Source of the DNA: Laetmonice hystrix
Taxonomy: Eukaryota
Assembly: GCA_965235115.1 (NCBI GenBank)
Contig: OZ249442.1
Coordinates: forward strand, 15,748,001 to 15,812,000
Length of the DNA stretch: 64,000 nt
Direction of reading: 5' to 3'
Shown: positions 1-63,948 of the stretch, piece by piece
How the letters are laid out: every line of letters begins with the position of its first letter
How positions within the stretch are numbered: the stretch's first letter is position 1
Position numbers and translations under genes: made by a program
Notes under the pieces: generated by a model
Seen by the model: only the letters and a program-made list of their open reading frames with translations
Told to the model about the DNA's origin: nothing
The model's database searches: none

Positions 1-3000
1 TATAGGCTACTGGAGTTTGAAATTAAATATACCGCATGTCTGAATTTTACAGCCTTGAGAATTCAGCTCCTCTGCGTTCGGTAACGCATGTAGGGGCCTA
101 GTCGTGTCTCTTCTAACATTCACATGGCAAGGTGAATTCTAGAATACGACTCATGGTCATGAGGCGAAACAGAACATAAACTCAAAGCTACCAGTTCCGG
201 GGGCAAAGACACCTATTGGAGTGTAGGCCCACGACCCATGCAGGGGCAAAGAACAGCAATCCCAGCAAACACGGTATGTTTTTACAACGTTGCTAATAAA
301 CGTTTCTGCAATGCTATAAATGTTTTATTTGGAGTAATTCCGTCCATCCGTCCCATCCATTCTTCCAACGCCGATACATATTACTAAGTATTTGAAACAT
401 GTCAGAAATTCGTGGTTCTTGTCGGGAGATCAGGTTACTGTCGGATTGTATCAGAGGCGAGCTTTGGTCATGATTAGAAGGGGTCTGGTAGATCTCTCGG
501 TTATCAGGTAACCCAATTCGGGAACAGAGATCGAAAATATACGATCCACGTCATGTGTAACGTTACATAGTGAAGTATCATAAAGTAAAATCACATACAA
601 TCAGTCCTTTGGGTGATGTACTTTATGTTCAATATATTCCGGTTGCACACGAAATCTGACGGATACTTGTGGTTGGGCGTAATAGGGGCCTACAATAAAA
701 AAGGGGGAGGGGGAGGTTGGATATGGGTAGACATACGGTTTGGACATATAGCAAATGGTACAACTGCATGAGGACACCTGCACTAAGAACAGGCGGTATG
801 TGGTTATCGAAATTACTTATGATCTAGGAGGTCTACATTCCTAAAATGAAGCCTTTTCGACCCTAGGCCTTTTTCAGATTTCCTATTTGGATCCTCCTAT
901 CCATGTTGCCCCCCCCCCCCTCCATTCTCGTCTGCTTCTAAAATAGTGAAAGATTTCCAACTTTTCTGTAGAAACACACAGTTCAAGCGTTTCCATTAGG
1001 GCCATGCGTTTTTAGACTAAAAACATTGTACGAACTAATGGCTTTACTAATGACCAAAGTATATAAAAACAACACATTATTTGATTGTTATTTATTCACT
1101 TGCTACTGATGCAATCAAAATAATCGGTTTATGCGTCATCATTATTACAAGAAAACAAAAAGAAGTTTTTTCATCTCTATCCAAACGCCTTGTTAATTGA
1201 GATTGGTTTTATACGCCTAACGAGCGGCCTATGGATCTATATTATTCCAATTAGTAGGTCCCCATCAATGTTTACCCCAAACTACCGTTGTAATAATAAT
1301 TATTATTGATCAATTGCTTTTACAATTGCTCAACTAAATGCATGAAAATTGGACTGCGCAAAAACTACCCAAGCCCTGTATATAATTGTGAAAATAGGCG
1401 ACACAAATTTGGCCTGATAAGATCAAAGACCGATTAGACGGTCTTTGATAAAATCTACCTCGCGATGTAGTTGGAGTAGCTGCCACCTCTGGCGCCTCTT
1501 GTAGCTGACTTATGAGTATTATACTACTGCTCAAGGCTACCGTATATTGTATAAAAGTACTAAAGCGTCGCTAACACGGCGTCAATATGAAGGTGTTCAT
1601 ACTGTAATAAGATCCAAGTCCGCGCACTACTGACGATCTAGAAGGATAACAAATTCTGCACACCTGCTGGACTCCCTGATCGATAGATTTAAAGGGTAAT
1701 GCAGTAACTGATGCTTAAACTTGAAGAGCAACCTATCTTTTGTACTATCCCTGCCGCCAAGACAAACGACAGTGTGGGGGGGGGGCGTTATTATAGGCCC
1801 ACACGATATATAAACTCCAGTCTCAAGAAAAGAAATCCCATTCGTCAACAATTCAACTGGATGTCATCCTGCGATTCGATCCAACGAGGAGTTCTCGAAC
1901 AATATGATACATGTGTTCTATTGAAGAGTGCAGTAAAACGATATTATCAGTGATCCCATGTTTGATAAGGCAGGTAGGTATACTTCCGTATTACGTTATT
2001 GAACATGGGATGACGATTTTATTATTTGGTTTTCAAAGCGAGGCTACCAAGTAATACAGTCCCCTCCGGTGACGTCAAACATGTAATACAGGAAATATCA
2101 GCGCTGGGACGTTCAACCCTCGATCAACCCCGTAGTACAGCTTTATATTGAGAAATAACCGACCAACCACGTTTCAGTATTCTACATTTTAATGTAATTG
2201 TAATTTGGAAATTAGTAACCGACGTCAGGGGGCTATTTCTAGACGCAGGTGCAGCTTATCTGCGTAACTTCAAAAAAATAAGAATTAATGGGGTAGAAAG
2301 ATATCCTGGGAAAATTGTCCAGTCATTCGGTCATAGACGTCAGTGAATCGCACATCGACCCTCCTAACGACACTGGAGATGGTTTTTATGATCGACACCC
2401 CCTCAGGACCTGAATACTTCCAGCTGCCATAAAACCAGCAATAAATGATTGTCAGCAAACAATCACAGTTCCAGGAGTTTTCTGAAATCTTCCGGGAATT
2501 GCTGTATTCTTTTCTCTCCAGGACATCATCCGGCCATAAGGAGACAGTGAACCGGTGGATTTTACGCCCTGTCACCAGTATTTCAACCATACTGACAGCG
2601 TAAATACAACGTTTATAAATTGTTCAGTTGATGTTCCAAGGGGGTGATGATGAAGATGAAGTGAGAAAGAAACCTGCCACCTGGGAGCAATCCCTTACAC
2701 TTTTTGAACCATGGAACGTCAACTCTGGTGGCCAGAGGCGTAGGAAGACGCAAACAGTGATGTGTGCATCCCTTTAAAAAAATCAAAACGTATATTTAAA
2801 CGCAAACTCAGCAGTGATATGAAGGGGCGAAGTAAGCCCCCGTGAAAACTATGCCATACATCTGTACCTTGCCATGTACTTTACGTATACGTGTGCACCT
2901 AAAAGTTTTGCTACAAAGCATGAAAAACAAGATAGAACACGGATGTAGCGAAAGTTAATATCCCGAACTGCAACCCTTAATGAGGTTGCCCTGGTTCTTG

Positions 3001-3338
3001 GCGGATGGATTGCAATCAAACCTGGTTGAGGCCTAGCAAGCATAAATTGGATGCGGAGTTGCGCAGGCAGACGTTTGTAGAAATGTAATCAGTTTGTGGC
3101 ATTGCACCACACGCACGGAATTATGGTATTCTTGAGCTTACGTCGACCTCCCATAATCACACCCTGTTTGGTATCCCTCTAGGCCCTACTTCGTGCGAAT
3201 AATGCTCATGTGTAGATAATAGATGCAATGATTTAAATCACGCTTTATCCGCTTATAAATGGTGATCACAAAGGTAATTATTTAGAAATAGCATATTAAC
3301 TTGCGCAGTAGTCTTTATGTTCTGCTATGTGTGTGGGC

Positions 3339-3374
3339 GAGGAGCAGGAGGAGGAGGAGGAGGAGGAGGAGGAG
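3339..3374. repeat. (GGA)n microsatellite
   Basis: Run of gga/gag triplets. Confidence 0.85.
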
Positions 3375-3527
3375 CTACCTGAACTGGACGGGTGCAGCTT
3401 GCGAGTGCTCTCCTTGAAAACCGCACCACATCTACACATCTCTCGCAACCAAATCATCTGATCACATTATTTCCAGAAGGAGCAACCATAATATAGCTCG
3501 AGCATATGGTTAGAGCAATGTACTCAC

Positions 3528-6500
3528 CCACAGACGTGCTCAAGTTGAATATCGGTGTATGTGGGGAAGATAGTCTGTTCGGTGAACTGTTGAAGTGGTT
3601 TCATGCACCGTTCAATGTCCTTGACTGTACACGTGTGCCAGCACAGGATACCAGCAACTGTAACAGACCACGACAATATACCTTCAAAATCCTCAAGCAA
3701 CGTTTGCTCAAATTCTAAAAGCCTTTATCTGTTAACAAGTCTGTAGGATTACACTTGTTGAGGGTAACGTTCACCCATAACCTCTATTGCCATTCATTTT
3801 TAAGACCATTACATATGTATACACATGTATATTATTCAAAACGTCACAGTCTCAGGCCCCATTCACACAGCGGCCGATAGCGACACTGACACCGACGCCG
3901 ACGTCGTTGGCCGACACACGGCCGGAGAATAGAGAGCAATGACAACAATATGTTACGTCCAGAGGTAATACCAACTGACGTTCATGGCTGTCTGTTGTCT
4001 ACTTTTCATCAAAATCATTAGAGGCGACCCTTCCGAAATAGCACTACGCCACATATTATGTTGATACCCACTTCTCTAGTTACTCCTGTACCGAGAACGA
4101 AGGCGATTAACGCTATCAAATGCTTTACGAAGATCTGTGAATAAGGCCAAATCACAGTTAATAGTGACACTTATTGCAACAAAAGATGTGTATCACCAGT
4201 AGGTTTTCCGGCAGTTTTCCTGCACTTATAATCATCCATCATTCGCAGGAAACACAACCAGACCATTCTTAACTATTTCTATACAATTAGCATCTTTATG
4301 AATGGCCGAGTGCGTTGCCTTCATTCTGTACATGGATGGAAGAAGTCCATCAACGACTTCACCAGGTAACTTTTACCTGTTAAGTCCACGTACATTACCG
4401 CGAATCCTGCTAGTTGGATTTCCCCAACAAAATGTCTAGGGGTAGTAGGTACCTAACGCAACCTTTAGCCGTGGTTAGTTGATATTCAGCGGCATGCAGC
4501 TGGGCTAAATTAAGTTTGACAAATTGGACATCTTGGCGTGGAGAGTGGTGCCGAGGGTGGTGGCATGGATGACGGCCTCAGGGCCCGGATTCCGTTCATT
4601 GTGGAGGAGGGCGACGTGGTTGTGTCTGTCGCAGAATCTCCTTATCTCTGTTTAAAAGTTTTTTTCTATAGGTTTCTAGTCATGGGAGCAGATAAATAAA
4701 GACACACTGAAAAAGAGATACATCCTTTACAGGATCATTACCAGAAGTATGCTACGCACGCAGCGGCCAGAATGATTGCATTTGGGAGTTGTCGTCCTCA
4801 CAGACAAGGAAAGAATCGGTTTGATACTATTGTAATTCTATTTTTAATTATTCCATATGTTCATGTGCAATCAACGGACGTCCTTGCTTTTATAGAACAT
4901 TGTGTGCATGTTGATTAAAGTCAATGTATTGAATGATATAGCCTTATTTGAGCGCATTGCCCTGAAAATAGCCTTCAGTTTCTGTAAAAATGCGGGGGTA
5001 ACACATATCAATGTATTGAGGTTTTGGCACTGCCATTAATTATAGGCTGGGCTTAATTAGGCTTGAAACCAAATAGCTGCACCTTTCAACCCAGTCGATT
5101 TACTTGATAATGATAAACGCTTGAAGATCAGGGAGGTCTCAATTTGCCCGGGTTGGCAGAGCAGGGCAGGACTTGTCACCGCCCTGCAACCGCTGGACTG
5201 CCGGGCCAAGGCCGCCAGGCTCAACAAGAGCATACAAACGACCCTTTGTTGGCAGCAGCACTTGGTAAAGCGTCCATCTCCATCACCATCCTTTGTGAAC
5301 CACCACAACGGCGATCACCGCCCCTGTGAAAATAATGGAAATAACTCGAATGAATGTGACCGATTGAAAAGGAGCGCGCGTTGTATCTGTCCACATATAT
5401 CCCCCCGTGGTGATTGAGTTCGGCGCACGGCCATCGACTTGATGCTGATTGGCATTAACCTGCCATCATGTCCTCTACATCTTCATTGAACAAAAGGGAA
5501 TGGCGCATCGTACTCCTAGCTCGATGCCGGCTATTATTACCACAACCTACTTCAGATTTATCATATTTATGACTACAGTACACTAATGGAAATACATGTA
5601 GCACCTTTTCATGTCTCCAATAGGGGGAGTGGTAGTGGACGACGACCATATAGATTCTTCTATTAGCCAGGACGCAGTCCTTAGAGCTGTAGATTGCGGG
5701 ACGTTGCCATAGCTTCCTCTTTCATGCTAACTTTAATTTATCCACTTTACCAATTCAATAAGACGTGACAGAGACTCAGCGGCCGAGTCAAAACGATGGA
5801 CACAAGAATAACGACGATAGGCTCATCACTTCATAAACAGTCTGGTCAACTCTGACCGAGATATACATAACGAATGTAATGGATGAATCAGTCATTCGGA
5901 GCGAAAAGAGAGTCCCTGCACTTTAGTTTTTAATGAGAACCCCCATGACGTGAACGAGATTGTCTGACTAAAAATCAGATACTACATGTATTAACGTTTG
6001 ATAATTATACGGCACCCGGAACCATAATTACCTGGTCGCCTTGACAACCAGCGCCGATCTGTCTTAAGTCACCTTGTAAACCCATTGAAGCACAGAGTTA
6101 TAATTATTGGCGGCTTTCATAGATTCAATGCTCTGAGGTTATTTATTCGCTAGGTTCTGTGGTGTAAAAGTCATCATAGACGACCACGGCCAGGTGACAC
6201 ATGCAGACAGATAGCAGACGGTGTCGGATCTTTCTTTAGTTCATTTTCCCGACCTCCTACATTCATTGGCCGGAGAGGTCGCGGCTTATGTCCCCTGAGA
6301 AATCCAGTTCCTTGATCTCTTGGACAGCTTAGATGGGAACTGTTCTTGTCATATGTGGCCAATCATCATTGCTGCATAAAAGGGAAAGGGTGAAGGTTCC
6401 ATGGCAAATAGTTCCATCATACACACATACAGAATAGGGCAGGGGGAGGGGGAGTCGGTTATTGTGGTCATTGTCTCGGGGTGTGTTTCCATCACGGTGC

Positions 6501-59845: not shown

Positions 59846-59853
59846 TATATAAA
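59846..59853 (+). promoter_or_regulatory. Candidate TATA box of the secreted-protein gene
   Basis: GGA-TATATAAA-CG, ~165 nt upstream of the ATG at 60013. Confidence 0.5.
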
Positions 59854-60012
59854 CGCCACTCCACGCCGCATAGGCATGACATCATAATAAAATGCTCCAC
59901 GGCTACGTAAACGTCCGGTGGTCTTGCTGTGAAGTTAAATAGTCCAATCAAGTGCATGTTTAATATTCCGTTACGCGTTTAATGTACCGGTACATGTAGG
60001 TTGCAGCAAACA

Positions 60013-62782
60013 ATGGATACGCACTGCTTCCTCGTTTCCTTTTCGTTCGTCGTTGCTGGAGTTATTTCTGTTTCGGCCGTGGAGCAAGGCTATCAACAGA
60101 GTTCGCGGCACTCCAATACGAGGATTTCGGATTATGGCCTGCGCGGACACCAACGATATGCGCCACGCAGTCCTTACGCGACTGCATATACAGGTTTGCT
60201 TGCCTTGTGGTATTTTCTGTTTTCTTCGAGATATTGTAAATTATGAAGAATAATAACCTTTAGGAGACACAAAAATGTGCATCATAGAAGGAACTAGGCC
60301 CTAAGTGAACATTTAAGTGTAGGCCTAACTGTGTGTAGGCCTGTAGATGTGTCAGTTAGTTATATTATTGTCCAGCCAGGTTTAGGCCTATTTGCAATCA
60401 TGAAGAGCAGATAATATTGTGTTCCAACTTTTGTCCCGAAAGGTTACACAAGAGGGTACTACAACCCGCGGAATGTGATGCTGGCTGCACTAGTCCCCGT
60501 AGAGTTACAGGCGTATCAAAACACCCTTTACGGATCAAGCCCGACGGATTTTAGCCCAGCTGATGCTAAGTTTATTTCTGGAAAACGTTACGAAAAGAAC
60601 CCGTTCATGTATCATAAAGCAAAACACCTTTTTCAATCTGGAAATCGAGCAATCCTACCATTGTCACTCTACCAGTTGAACCCAGATGTAGGCCTATATA
60701 GGCAAGGAACATACCAGTATGGGGGCAACATGCGAACAAATTCGGTTAATGACAAACGGGGTTACAGGAAACCCTTCGAAAATTTAGAGGACCCTCCTAC
60801 GAACGTTCCACTACGGGGGTCCAATGGGTCGAAGCGATACACCGGAAGCTACTTTAACGGAGGAGGAGCCTTGCACTCGAAGATAGGTTACGGAAGCCGT
60901 GCTCGTAGAGCTGACTTGCCGCGGGATGGCTACTATAGCGCAGAATCCGATCTTGGGTTCCGCAGAAACGATTACCCACCACAACACGTCAGTTTGTACG
61001 GTTACACACCTAAACAAGCAGTAGGTTGGTCAGTCAAGCTGTACACCCATGAACAAGGTAGGCCCTACGATGTATTACGCTTTGATTTGCTTCTATACAG
61101 CGTGATTGTCCTGATTTTGCCAAATCTCTCATTCATCACCCTATTTTTGAGTGTATAGTTTTTTTTGACTCACCATGTACCTGTATATTATAATGCAGGT
61201 ATTTCTATGTTCGAATGCTCGAAATGCTTCAAACCCCCTCAGTGCACAAACTGGGCTTTAAACTCTATATTGAAGTTGCTCCAATCGCTCTTTTCGTTTT
61301 CCATGGGGACTAAAAGGCTATAATGAGAGTATACTGCACATTAATTGCCCCAACAATTATCAGGTTAACCTATTGGTCTCCGCCTCATAGTTCCAGTGTC
61401 ACACATGCAAGGCAAAAGTAGGACGGAACTTTGCCTGAATCGTAGCTCAGCTGATGTTTATGAATACGTTGGCATGCATGTTTGGTCCCAAAGTTCAGGA
61501 GAATTGCATGTAAATGCGGGCATGTTAACAATCAAGGGCGTGGAACTTCAAACATTTGCCAATTCTTACCGAATAATATTATTGGAATTAAGAGGTTTTC
61601 TTTACATGTGTATCGTGTTTTGGGCTACTAAAAGAAAACGTAATTATGCCGACGTCATCATAAACCTAGGAAACGGTTGGATACGACTTGTGTTTTTTGG
61701 TTGGTTCCTGTATAGTTCTCTGTGCTAACAAAAATCATGGTGGCAGATTAATATGAGACACACGGACAGAAGCTGATTCATGCCTATGACCCTTCTGAAT
61801 TGAATTGAACGTTGGGATCTGTCGTGACATTTAAATTTGTCCCGGTGTACGGAAAGTGCATAATTATAATTATGGTTCTTAAATTGGCATTTTCCGGGTC
61901 AGACACATGCTTTGATTTATATTACAATGATAAACACAGAGAATTAGAAACCCGAGGCACCGTGTGAAATAAAACACACTTATACGTATGTTATGGTCCA
62001 CCTATATGTTTACAACCCCCCCCCCCCCATGCATGTCTGCTATAGGGGCCTGTACATGGACAGTTGGTTTAGGATACGCTATCGTGGTTGCTGAATCCCA
62101 TTATCTCAAGTATGGGGAAATGAATTATATTCAGCAGGCACTGTGTAAAGTGCCACATTTGAAGATCTTAATAGATATTAATTGCAAATTATTTTCAAAT
62201 TATATCCATCAAATACAAATACAAATCACGATAATACAGTGATACTCCGTGAGCAATAATAATATTGTTGCCTTGTGATACAGAAAGGTTTCCTTCCCTC
62301 AAAATGTCATTACGAGAGACAAAAACTATTGTGTACTGTTTTGTCTTGCTGGTCTCCCCTGAGGGACCCCGTGGCGTCTTACCTTGGGACGTTTCCCTGA
62401 GCTGCCCTTAGAAAAGAAACCATTAAAGAATAATATTGTTGCCTTGTGATACAGAGACGGTAACAAATCTTTTGTGGACAACTTCTGTGTCCCTAAAAAA
62501 ACATGCCTTATATAAAATGATGATAACGTTATTGTCTTCGATTGGCTATACCTTTCAGCTTGCCGACGGCTGGGGCTGTACCTGAGGGACCCGGACGACC
62601 GCTGTTCCTACTACCGTTGTATGTACGGCGACCAGCCCATGAAAAGGGACGGCTCCGTGTGGGTGGTAGCCCGGAGAATGAGCTGCCCACCCGGAACCTC
62701 GGTCCCCTACAACTACAGCGGAGGACAGGCCGCCCCCTGTACCGTCTCCGACAACTTCTGTCTACACAAGGTGCACCTGTAG
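60013..62782 (+). CDS. Secreted Tyr/Gly-rich protein with dibasic sites and a C-terminal six-Cys chitin-binding type-2-like domain: join(60013..60193, 60443..61057, 62559..62782), 339 aa
   Basis: Signal-like MDTHCFLVSFSFVVAGVISVSA; donor G|GTTTGC; acceptor TTTTGTCCCGAAAG|; 615-nt open exon; donor AAG|GTAGGC; acceptor CCTTTCAG|; exon 3 CRRLGLYLRDPDDRCSYYRC...MSCPPGTSVPYNYSGGQAAPCTVSDNFC with GC-rich third positions. All junctions are phase 1 and the total is 1020 nt. The stop at 62782 is less certain because a weak donor AAG|GTGCAC exists at 62770. Confidence 0.72.
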
Positions 62783-63794
62783 GTGGCGTGCACTGGTGGG
62801 CATGCATGACCGGCGCTAGCTATAGACAGAACCCCAGGTTAGACCGAAGCTATCAGGAAGGGGGTGGCGCCCCCTGTCAAAACTCTGTGGAACCTCTGTA
62901 CTCGTACCCTGTTGAATTTTACCTCACACACGCACCGAGTGAGAATTTTCTGTCTACGGCCCTGGTCTGGTATATAGGGTCACGAGGAGTTGGGTTGGAC
63001 ATGGCCCATGAAATAATCCAGCAATATTATAGTTATGTATAACCATGGTATAACTATATTATAGCATCGCGAACCCGATCCCGACGACCCCCCCCCCCCA
63101 CCCCCACCTCGACACAACCCCATCATCCCAGTACAAGATCCTCCTGATGACGACAAATGATTAAGCATGCCCTTTTATATAGAATATAAGGGGTTTTTAA
63201 TATAAGTTTTACTCATTATTATATAGAGTAGACCTATTGCAAGGTGTGTACATAGTCACCATATAACACCGCCATTGTGATCTTTAATGTCGACCTTGCG
63301 GTTATTACATCAACACTGCCGCACGAGTCTCGGTGTCCTTACGTCTGCAGTCCAGGAAGGGTCAGCCAGCCGTGTCGCCAAGTTATATATAAGTCTAGAC
63401 AATATCGCTGTCATTAAAACATATTTATTAAATTTTCCCATTTTACTTTTTATCACGTAATAACTTTCAACACCATCAAAACATGAATAGACACAGCAAT
63501 GCATTGTGATTATGATGGTACAATATAATGTACCAGAATTTGGTTTACATGTGACGTATTCAACTCAATCTAGGATTTCACACTGTTAATAGATTGGTTT
63601 ACGGTTTAATCACATAATTATTACTATGGGTTACTCCATATTATATTATGGTTCATCATTGGTTTATTAGAAACATTCTTTATCATAAACATTAAATTCT
63701 TTAATGCTAGCGCATTACCCGCTCTTAACACTACTAAACATGTTAAATGGTGTGTTTTTCACACACATGTCATGTCTCCTGGTTTATCAACCAC

Positions 63795-63948
63795 CCATCC
63801 ACCGATGGGTCGGACCCATCGGCCAATGGGCCGCGACCCTGGCGCGCCGCGTATCCACCGATGGGTCGCCCATCGGTCGATGGGCGACCCGTTGGCCGAT
63901 CCACCGATGGGTCTGACCCATCGGCCGATGGGCCAGATCGACCGATGG
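63795..63948. repeat. Cluster of short palindromes built from CCGATGGG/CCCATCGG
   Basis: CCGATGGGTC-G-GACCCATCGG (63802-63822), GGGTCGCCCATCG-GT-CGATGGGCGACCC (63863-63890), CCGATGGGTC-T-GACCCATCGG (63904-63924), CCCATCGGCCGATGGG (63917-63932). Confidence 0.85.

Follow-up and report, generated by a model that had tools for sequence, protein, structure and literature searches.

The window analysed here is a stretch of 64,000 nt from contig OZ249442.1 of Laetmonice hystrix, and at positions 60013–62782 on the + strand it contains a candidate gene for a tyrosine-rich protein ending in a six-cysteine domain. Joining 60013–60193, 60443–61057 and 62559–62782 by GT-AG splicing yields a 1020-nt coding sequence for 339 residues, closed by a TAG stop, with GT donors at 60194 and 61058, AG acceptors ending at 60442 and 62558, and every junction in phase 1. 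The ATG at 60013 has a good start context (A at –3, G at +4), and the hydrophobic N-terminus that follows is likely cleaved as a signal peptide after residue 22, between VSA and VE. As computed from the predicted sequence, the mature protein has a mass of ~36 kDa and an isoelectric point (pI) of ~9.6. The 339 residues include 32 Tyr (9.4%) and 32 Gly; one Cys lies within the signal peptide, and the remaining six are all in the C-terminal domain.

The coding part of exon 1 (60013–60193, + strand, as for all features below) comprises the ATG, the signal peptide (60013–60078) and a Tyr/Arg/Ser-rich spacer, and ends in phase 1. Intron 1 (60194–60442, 249 nt, GT..AG) separates it from exon 2 (60443–61057, 615 nt), an open frame of ~205 residues that is symmetric (phase 1-1) and ends in a good donor (AAG/GTAGGC). 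After intron 2 (61058–62558, 1501 nt, GT..AG) comes exon 3 (62559–62782), the last coding exon, whose phase-1 acceptor lies 2 nt 5′ of the first Cys codon and whose TAG stop occupies 62780–62782; the six-Cys domain, from Cys267 to Cys333, is encoded at 62561–62761. An earlier note on this DNA had listed a signal peptide, 32 Tyr in 339 residues, a set of dibasic sites, the six-Cys spacing and a CPPGT motif, all of which are present in the sequence. It was also correct that the open reading frame (ORF) listing misses the domain: over this region the listing gives a 166-residue ORF in another frame, and the true frame appears only as a 53-residue piece.

Three public runs contain the stretch, in the form of DNA contigs of one sample; they were identified as DNA because introns are covered as evenly as exons in all three. 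Comparison of these runs gave four exonic single-nucleotide polymorphisms (SNPs), at 60126 and 60132 (exon 1), 60684 (exon 2) and 62668 (exon 3), each of them a synonymous third-position change in the proposed frame. The 1020 nt of exons carry these 4 SNPs and no insertion or deletion (indel), vs 16 SNPs and 11 indels in the 1750 nt of introns (one SNP in intron 1, at 60202; 15 SNPs and all 11 indels in intron 2), so that variant density in exons is about four-fold below that in introns. The reading frames can be observed directly in the DNA, and the three-exon model that joins them is plausible on sequence grounds.

The six-cysteine domain and its relatives

The domain has Cys at 267, 281, 286, 308, 326 and 333 (C-x13-C-x4-C-x21-C-x17-C-x6-C) and includes the CPPGT motif. 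Comparison of the exon-3 product with the six-frame translation of the 627-Mb genome revealed about 12 paralogous six-Cys domains (E values 1e-7 to 1e-5). A hidden Markov model (HMM) built from 12 copies of this genome and searched against 1.84 billion proteins returned 109 cluster representatives, 35 of them at E ≤ 1e-10. These include the annelid Owenia fusiformis proteins CAH1799274, CAH1772294, CAH1792418 and CAH1790132, the brachiopod Lingula anatina protein XP_013393952 (mislabelled “thrombospondin-2”), and further members in Tara Oceans metatranscriptomes, from which it follows that the family is expressed elsewhere. BLASTP of the window domain against dozens of members gave E values of 2e-16 to 1e-9; the best identity is 44%, no close orthologue was found among them, and only the window gene has the Tyr-rich N-terminal arm. 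Word-indexed homologue searches with exon 3 and with a two-domain family alignment added nothing new.

Alignment of 76 family sequences (alignment A5) gave the consensus C-x3-G-Q-F-L-x2-P-x3-C-x-Y-x2-C-x-Y-G-x2-P-W-x-D-x2-G-x3-L-x6-C-x2-G-T-x-V-P ... N-P-C-x6-C, with five of the six Cys conserved in at least 90% of the sequences. The window domain carries every conserved column of this alignment (C1, G5, C15, C20, C42, G45, P59, C60 and C67); the Trp of the E-P-W motif, conserved in the family, is Met in the window domain. These alignments place the six-Cys module in an unnamed annelid–brachiopod family, which we call EPW-type. A Pfam scan of 10 of the paralogue domains at E ≤ 10 gave no match. 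One of the 109 representatives (P0001) alone came near the threshold of the Diedel family (PF13164; 20.9 vs 21.3 bits), and this was discarded as chance.

Many family members elsewhere are 90–160 residues long. Others combine the domain with tails or linkers of Tyr/Pro/Ser-rich composition (P0001, P0002, P0007, P0021 and P0035) or with extracellular PAN, laminin-G and TSP1 domains. The arms also vary among paralogues in this genome, one of which (L006) has a Pro-rich tail. In a 510-residue protein from a JGI metagenome/metatranscriptome contig (P0075), an alpha-carbonic anhydrase (PF00194, E 1e-74) is combined with one EPW-type domain through Ala/Pro/Thr-rich linkers; judged from this architecture, the enzyme may be anchored to chitin, and the combination recalls biomineralisation proteins.

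The paralogues share an intron position with the window gene, in addition to the conserved columns. In all 12, the first Cys codon starts exactly 2 nt after an AG (AG/NN-TG[CT]), corresponding to a phase-1 intron as in the window gene. Six of them (L002, L006, L007, L008, L009 and L010) have a signal-peptide exon 0.2–1.3 kb upstream with a phase-1, GTAAG-type donor. The observed family plan is therefore a phase-1 signal exon followed by a domain exon, and exons 1 and 3 of the window gene, as predicted, fit it. One of the six, L010 (G000:C12:11809214-11812411), encodes a signal peptide and, after it, ~200 or more residues in an open frame with a very high content of Lys, Arg and dibasic pairs; it thus seems, from its translation, to have a long basic N-terminal region of quite different composition from that of the window gene.

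Most of the paralogues (L003, L004, L007, L009, L010 and L013) lie in a loose cluster on contig 12, at ~11.78–12.70 Mb. Two of these, L003 and L004, have identical sequences and lie 3.76 kb from each other, indicative of a recent tandem duplication. The window gene is a lone copy, on contig 7.

This isolation from the family cluster, together with the absence of any RNA or protein record and a weak exon-1 donor, would suit a silent or decaying copy, that is, an unexpressed, dispersed family member whose frames are merely unbroken so far. We consider this very improbable: none of the three exons is broken, the domain retains its six Cys together with the remaining conserved family columns, the four exonic SNPs leave the protein unchanged, and variant density in exons is about four-fold below that in introns.

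The earlier note had related the last exon to CBM14/peritrophin-A domains, had pointed out that its Cys spacing departs from the canonical one, and had recognised no named family. Each of these points was borne out, the last by a Pfam scan of the exon products that gave nothing. A profile search of exon 3 with PF01607 (CBM_14), put forward in the same note, was negative at E ≤ 10, and PF01607 scores on only 6 of the 109 family-profile matches. Kinship to CBM14 is nevertheless evident at the profile level. The tail of the family HMM match list reaches two canonical multi-CBM_14 proteins, P0037 (E 1e-10) and P0099 (E 2e-4), both among these six. When compared by hhalign, profile against profile, with 21 canonical CBM14 domains (18 from this genome), the family reached a probability of 93.5% with its 12-sequence profile and 92.9% with its 76-sequence profile (E 2.4e-7 and 3.7e-7; 36 core columns).

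Like CBM14 (PF01607, SMART ChtBD2), the window domain is a module of ~60–70 residues with six Cys, and it keeps the elements G-x-[FY]-x-x-[HD]-P, C-x-[YF]-[YFL]-x-C-x-[YF]-G and C-P-x-G-T. The 21 canonical domains, taken from this genome and P0099, have C2-x5-C3 and ~x9–11 between C3 and C4, whereas the window domain has C2-x4-C3 and C3-x21-C4. The EPW-type family differs from CBM14 by a 13-residue insertion between C3 and C4, with the consensus E-P-W-x-D-x2-G-x3-L, and by a longer C4–C5 loop ending in a conserved N-P-C. Because of the C2-x4-C3 spacing, the C3–C4 insertion and the longer C4–C5 loop, we class the domain, on its sequence features, outside PF01607, in an unnamed and divergent branch of the CBM14 kind.

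Structure prediction, also suggested in the earlier note, leads to the same neighbourhood. In the CBM14 fold, three disulfides, expected to pair as C1-C3, C2-C6 and C4-C5, hold together a three-stranded sheet and a small hairpin. The AlphaFold2 (AF2) model of the domain has a predicted local distance difference test (pLDDT) score of 91.6. Exhaustive structural alignment with 48,161 PDB chains gave only 16 at Z ≥ 2, and ranks 1–6 and 8 are of CBM14 type: Der p 23, Aplysia EHEP, Blo t 12, Avr4 (twice), the CBM14 domain of CHIT1 (chitotriosidase) and tachycitin. The nearest neighbours found by Foldseek in PDB, AFDB clusters and Swiss-Prot are likewise nearly all CBM14 modules, though with weak scores, obstructor-E is among the structural neighbours, and in features from the ESM language model the domain adjoins PF01607 clusters. 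A search of PDB sequences with the family-alignment profile gave a single chance match, to an antibody chain. The predicted fold is thus very probably CBM14-like.

A CBM14-like fold need not serve as a chitin anchor. The structural neighbours include the antimicrobial tachycitin, Aplysia EHEP, which binds phlorotannin, and centipede scoloptoxins, which are derived from the CBM14 fold; the 13-residue insertion and altered Cys spacing could change specificity. An antimicrobial, toxin-like or polyphenol-binding function is improbable in our view, since most structural neighbours do bind chitin, the domain retains the aromatic positions found in the CBM14 core (GLY.., C-S-Y-Y-R-C and M-Y-G), and the partner domains within the family are of matrix type.

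The tyrosine-rich arm and exon 2

Between signal peptide and domain lies an arm of ~245 residues. Residues 23–265 are Cys-free and basic (pI 9.8), with 10.7% Tyr, 10.3% Gly, 8.6% Ser and 8.6% Arg, and the Tyr residues stand in varied contexts. The arm scores as disordered in the charge–hydropathy test, and its AF2 model has a pLDDT of 37.7 (obtained from a single sequence and thus weak evidence); it is probably disordered, as far as these predictions go. The earlier description of a low-complexity region of ~245 residues fails as regards repetitiveness, as the arm has no tandem repeats.

The same note had suggested that the gene may encode a prohormone-like polyprotein, in which furin or prohormone convertases would cut at dibasic sites to release Tyr-rich peptides, one of them perhaps amidated, and a free chitin-binding module. 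The precursor does have a signal peptide and six dibasic pairs in the arm, the listed sites being G-KR at residues 107–109, D-KR, S-KR, RA-RR at 213–216 and F-RR, and such processing has a precedent in molluscs, where cleavage at RMKR divides the matrix protein Pif into a chitin-binding and a low-complexity part (PMC11291548). However, the six pairs are not enriched over shuffled sequences (4.1 ± 1.8, P = 0.2). The sole G-K-R (60580–60588), a possible site of amidation and cleavage, is single and compatible with chance, and for the sole furin-type R-x-[KR]-R motif, R-A-R-R (60898–60909), ~0.2 are expected by chance on a composition estimate. The putative fragments are long (20–85 residues), mutually unrelated and free of tandem repeats, and no piece matches a neuropeptide or hormone family in Pfam. 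As no homologues of the arm were found among 5.8 billion proteins or in the species' own genome, no site is known to be conserved. The polyprotein interpretation therefore finds support neither in the statistics nor in comparison with relatives, and we give it a low probability, although a matrix precursor of this kind may be processed as Pif is.

Comparison with known precursors agrees with this. A signal peptide, dibasic sites and a single G-KR are what the window protein has in common with neuropeptide and prohormone precursors; it differs from them in having no repeated or conserved peptides, and its C-terminal disulfide-rich domain of carbohydrate-binding type is foreign to such precursors. 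The best precedent for processing, Pif (Pif97, Pif80), is a matrix protein secreted as a precursor, with chitin-binding domains of peritrophin type next to a low-complexity part, and RMKR is its dibasic cleavage site (PMC11291548). Pif contains a VWA domain and an Asp/Lys/Arg-rich aragonite-binding part; neither VWA nor acidic repeats were found in the window protein.

Most of the arm is encoded by exon 2. An open frame of 205 codons has a chance probability of ~1e-5 per position. With codon-usage log-odds trained on other coding exons of the same genome, exon 2 scores –0.02 in the proposed frame vs –0.31 and –0.66 in the other two, and this value is above that of every 612-nt window of intron 2 (maximum –0.40). 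The composition of exon 2 continues that of exon 1. There is also weak internal similarity between residues 40–90 and 209–261 (window positions ~60130–60530 and 60886–61044), with a local score of 60 vs 34 ± 6 in 100 shuffles; it crosses the exon 1/2 junction and suggests, at the level of sequence, an old internal duplication of the spacer preceding the domain. Exon 2 as a transposon or repeat was ruled out by its single copy in the genome.

A different product would arise if exon 2 were skipped, a cassette, or young: because exon 1 ends in the same phase as exon 2, phase 1, a direct junction between exons 1 and 3 keeps the frame and gives a protein of ~134 residues with signal peptide, short Tyr-rich spacer and domain. 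This short isoform has the plan of the paralogues L002, L006, L007, L008 and L009, in which the domain exon follows the signal exon, and falls within the size range of 90–160 residues common among relatives elsewhere. Exon 2 is moreover an orphan, and its GC content at third codon positions (GC3) is 0.48, vs 0.81 in exon 3 (0.52 in exon 1; 0.56–0.74 in paralogous domain exons); the low value could mean that the exon is young or little used. On the other side, an open frame of this length with an AG acceptor, a good GT donor and matching phases is very unlikely by chance. Its only SNP is synonymous, its codon score is higher than in the other two frames and than in any intron window, its composition and the internal similarity tie it to exon 1, and L010 also appears to have a long basic N-terminal region. 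Taken together, we infer that exon 2 is included in the mRNA and regard the short form as the main product as unlikely, though with an appreciable chance of being right.

A predicted chitin-anchored matrix protein

We lean towards reading the window gene as encoding a secreted, chitin-anchored, cross-linkable Tyr-rich matrix protein composed of signal peptide, arm and a CBM14-like, presumably disulfide-knotted module of ~67 residues. The C-terminal module would attach it to a structure based on chitin, such as chaetae, tube, cuticle or gut lining, and the flexible Tyr-rich arm would provide cohesion or covalent cross-links to neighbouring matrix proteins through 3,4-dihydroxyphenylalanine (DOPA), dityrosine or quinone tanning. 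The design logic would be that of insect resilin or of CPAP/peritrophin-type proteins. We read it as a matrix or biomaterial protein because one anchor module recurs with varied arms and extracellular partners. The secreted extracellular-matrix role proposed in the earlier note is thus retained as the most plausible one, with the matrix-type partners to which relatives join the domain in its support.

In resilin the chitin-binding domain is of the R&R type and the elastic motifs are strongly repeated. The window protein is like resilin and the CPAP1/obstructor proteins in being secreted and in combining one module of chitin-binding type with a disordered, Tyr/Gly-rich region that could be cross-linked through tyrosine; it differs in that its arm is non-repetitive and basic, and there is no sequence relationship outside the domain. 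With mussel foot proteins, sandcastle-worm cement and resilin it shares a secreted, Tyr/Gly-rich, basic and (as predicted here) disordered character, but its arm has no tandemly repeated short motifs. In the matrix proteome of an annelid tube, chitin-binding proteins make up a major and tandemly expanded part (PMC8476170), and among the tandemly expanded, secreted chitin-binding matrix proteins of annelids a class ExoChtBD is listed apart from ChtBD2 (PMC8476170, PMC2175520). The likeness of annelid tube-matrix proteins, including ExoChtBD, to the EPW-type family is by description only and serves as a lead.

Several observations weigh against the matrix-protein reading. At the level of the gene, the search for RNA evidence of the junctions returned only DNA runs, which give no splice information, and the exon-1 donor, GTTTGC, is weak. 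A word-indexed search of the 5.8-billion-protein collection did not find the protein. Exon 2 is symmetric and so skippable, has a lower GC3 than exon 3, is without a homologue in the same word-indexed search, and is single copy, without a paralogue in its own 627-Mb genome. The arm DNA contains no tandem repeats, nor does the arm have a repeated motif typical of known DOPA or elastic proteins. As to the domain, a Pfam scan at E ≤ 10 of all three exon products matched no family, CBM_14 included, and C2-x4-C3 stands in place of the canonical C2-x5-C3. The structural scores are individually weak (Z 3.0–4.6, TM 0.36–0.58, Foldseek E 0.01–1), although modest scores are expected because the domain has only ~60 residues. 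Chitin binding is putative for every member of the subfamily.

A bolder version, which we hold to be rather doubtful, is that the EPW-type module is a distinct chitin-binding class of annelids and brachiopods, possibly specific for beta-chitin and perhaps akin to the beta-chitin-binding protein of the Riftia tube, and that the recent birth of an orphan exon made a new structural protein: a symmetric exon without relatives, lineage-specific, would have been inserted between standard signal and domain exons and would have brought in a cross-linkable Tyr-rich arm of 205 residues.

The fold and the design principle are already known, and the gene does not open a new field. What is new is a sizeable domain subfamily missed by databases, and the orphan symmetric exon from which the arm of the window gene derives. 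If the reading is true, at least ~100 sequence clusters in annelids, brachiopods and marine metatranscriptomes are overlooked by current domain databases, and lophotrochozoan chitin-binding matrix proteins are therefore under-counted in annotations and in tube, chaetae and shell proteomes. The pairing of one anchor with diverse arms, be they Tyr-rich, Pro-rich, basic or acidic, or with an enzyme (carbonic anhydrase, for example), would then form a natural series, which would help to understand, and to borrow, the tough chitin composites of marine worms. The orphan symmetric exon would likewise offer a testable example of a new disordered segment added to an old gene.

Other features of the locus

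A pattern scan found a TATA-like box, TATATAAA, at 59846–59853, 160 bp 5′ of the ATG, as weak evidence of a possible core promoter. The interval from this box to the start codon contains several further ATGs, within 59877–60012; either the transcription start site may lie closer to the ATG than the TATA-like box, or the 5′ leader may contain short upstream ORFs. Another phase-1 donor is present at 60236, the use of which would add 14 hydrophobic residues to exon 1.

Candidate alternative first exons for exon 3 within intron 2 were rejected, being short, with poor donors and in repeated DNA. If translation ran on past the exon-2 donor, it would append a hydrophobic tail of 33 residues, which derives from a very high-copy repeat and was judged an accident. 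This repeat fragment lies in intron 2 at 61105–61184, where, in each of the three DNA runs, contig depth rises from ~45 to ~2,700–5,200; many contigs are broken at this point, their continuations being unrelated. Further along intron 2 is a 30-nt direct repeat, at 62255–62284 and 62426–62455, whose copies are 97% identical and 171 nt apart. A stretch of raised contig depth (62289–62366) lies between the copies, and the flanked stretch, ~100 nt 5′ of the exon-3 acceptor, looks like a small inserted or duplicated element.

Poly-C runs occur at ~62017–62028 and ~63089–63100, and 3′ of the gene, at 63797–63946, there is a GC-rich tandem repeat of 46-nt units in ~2.7 copies with 78% matches.

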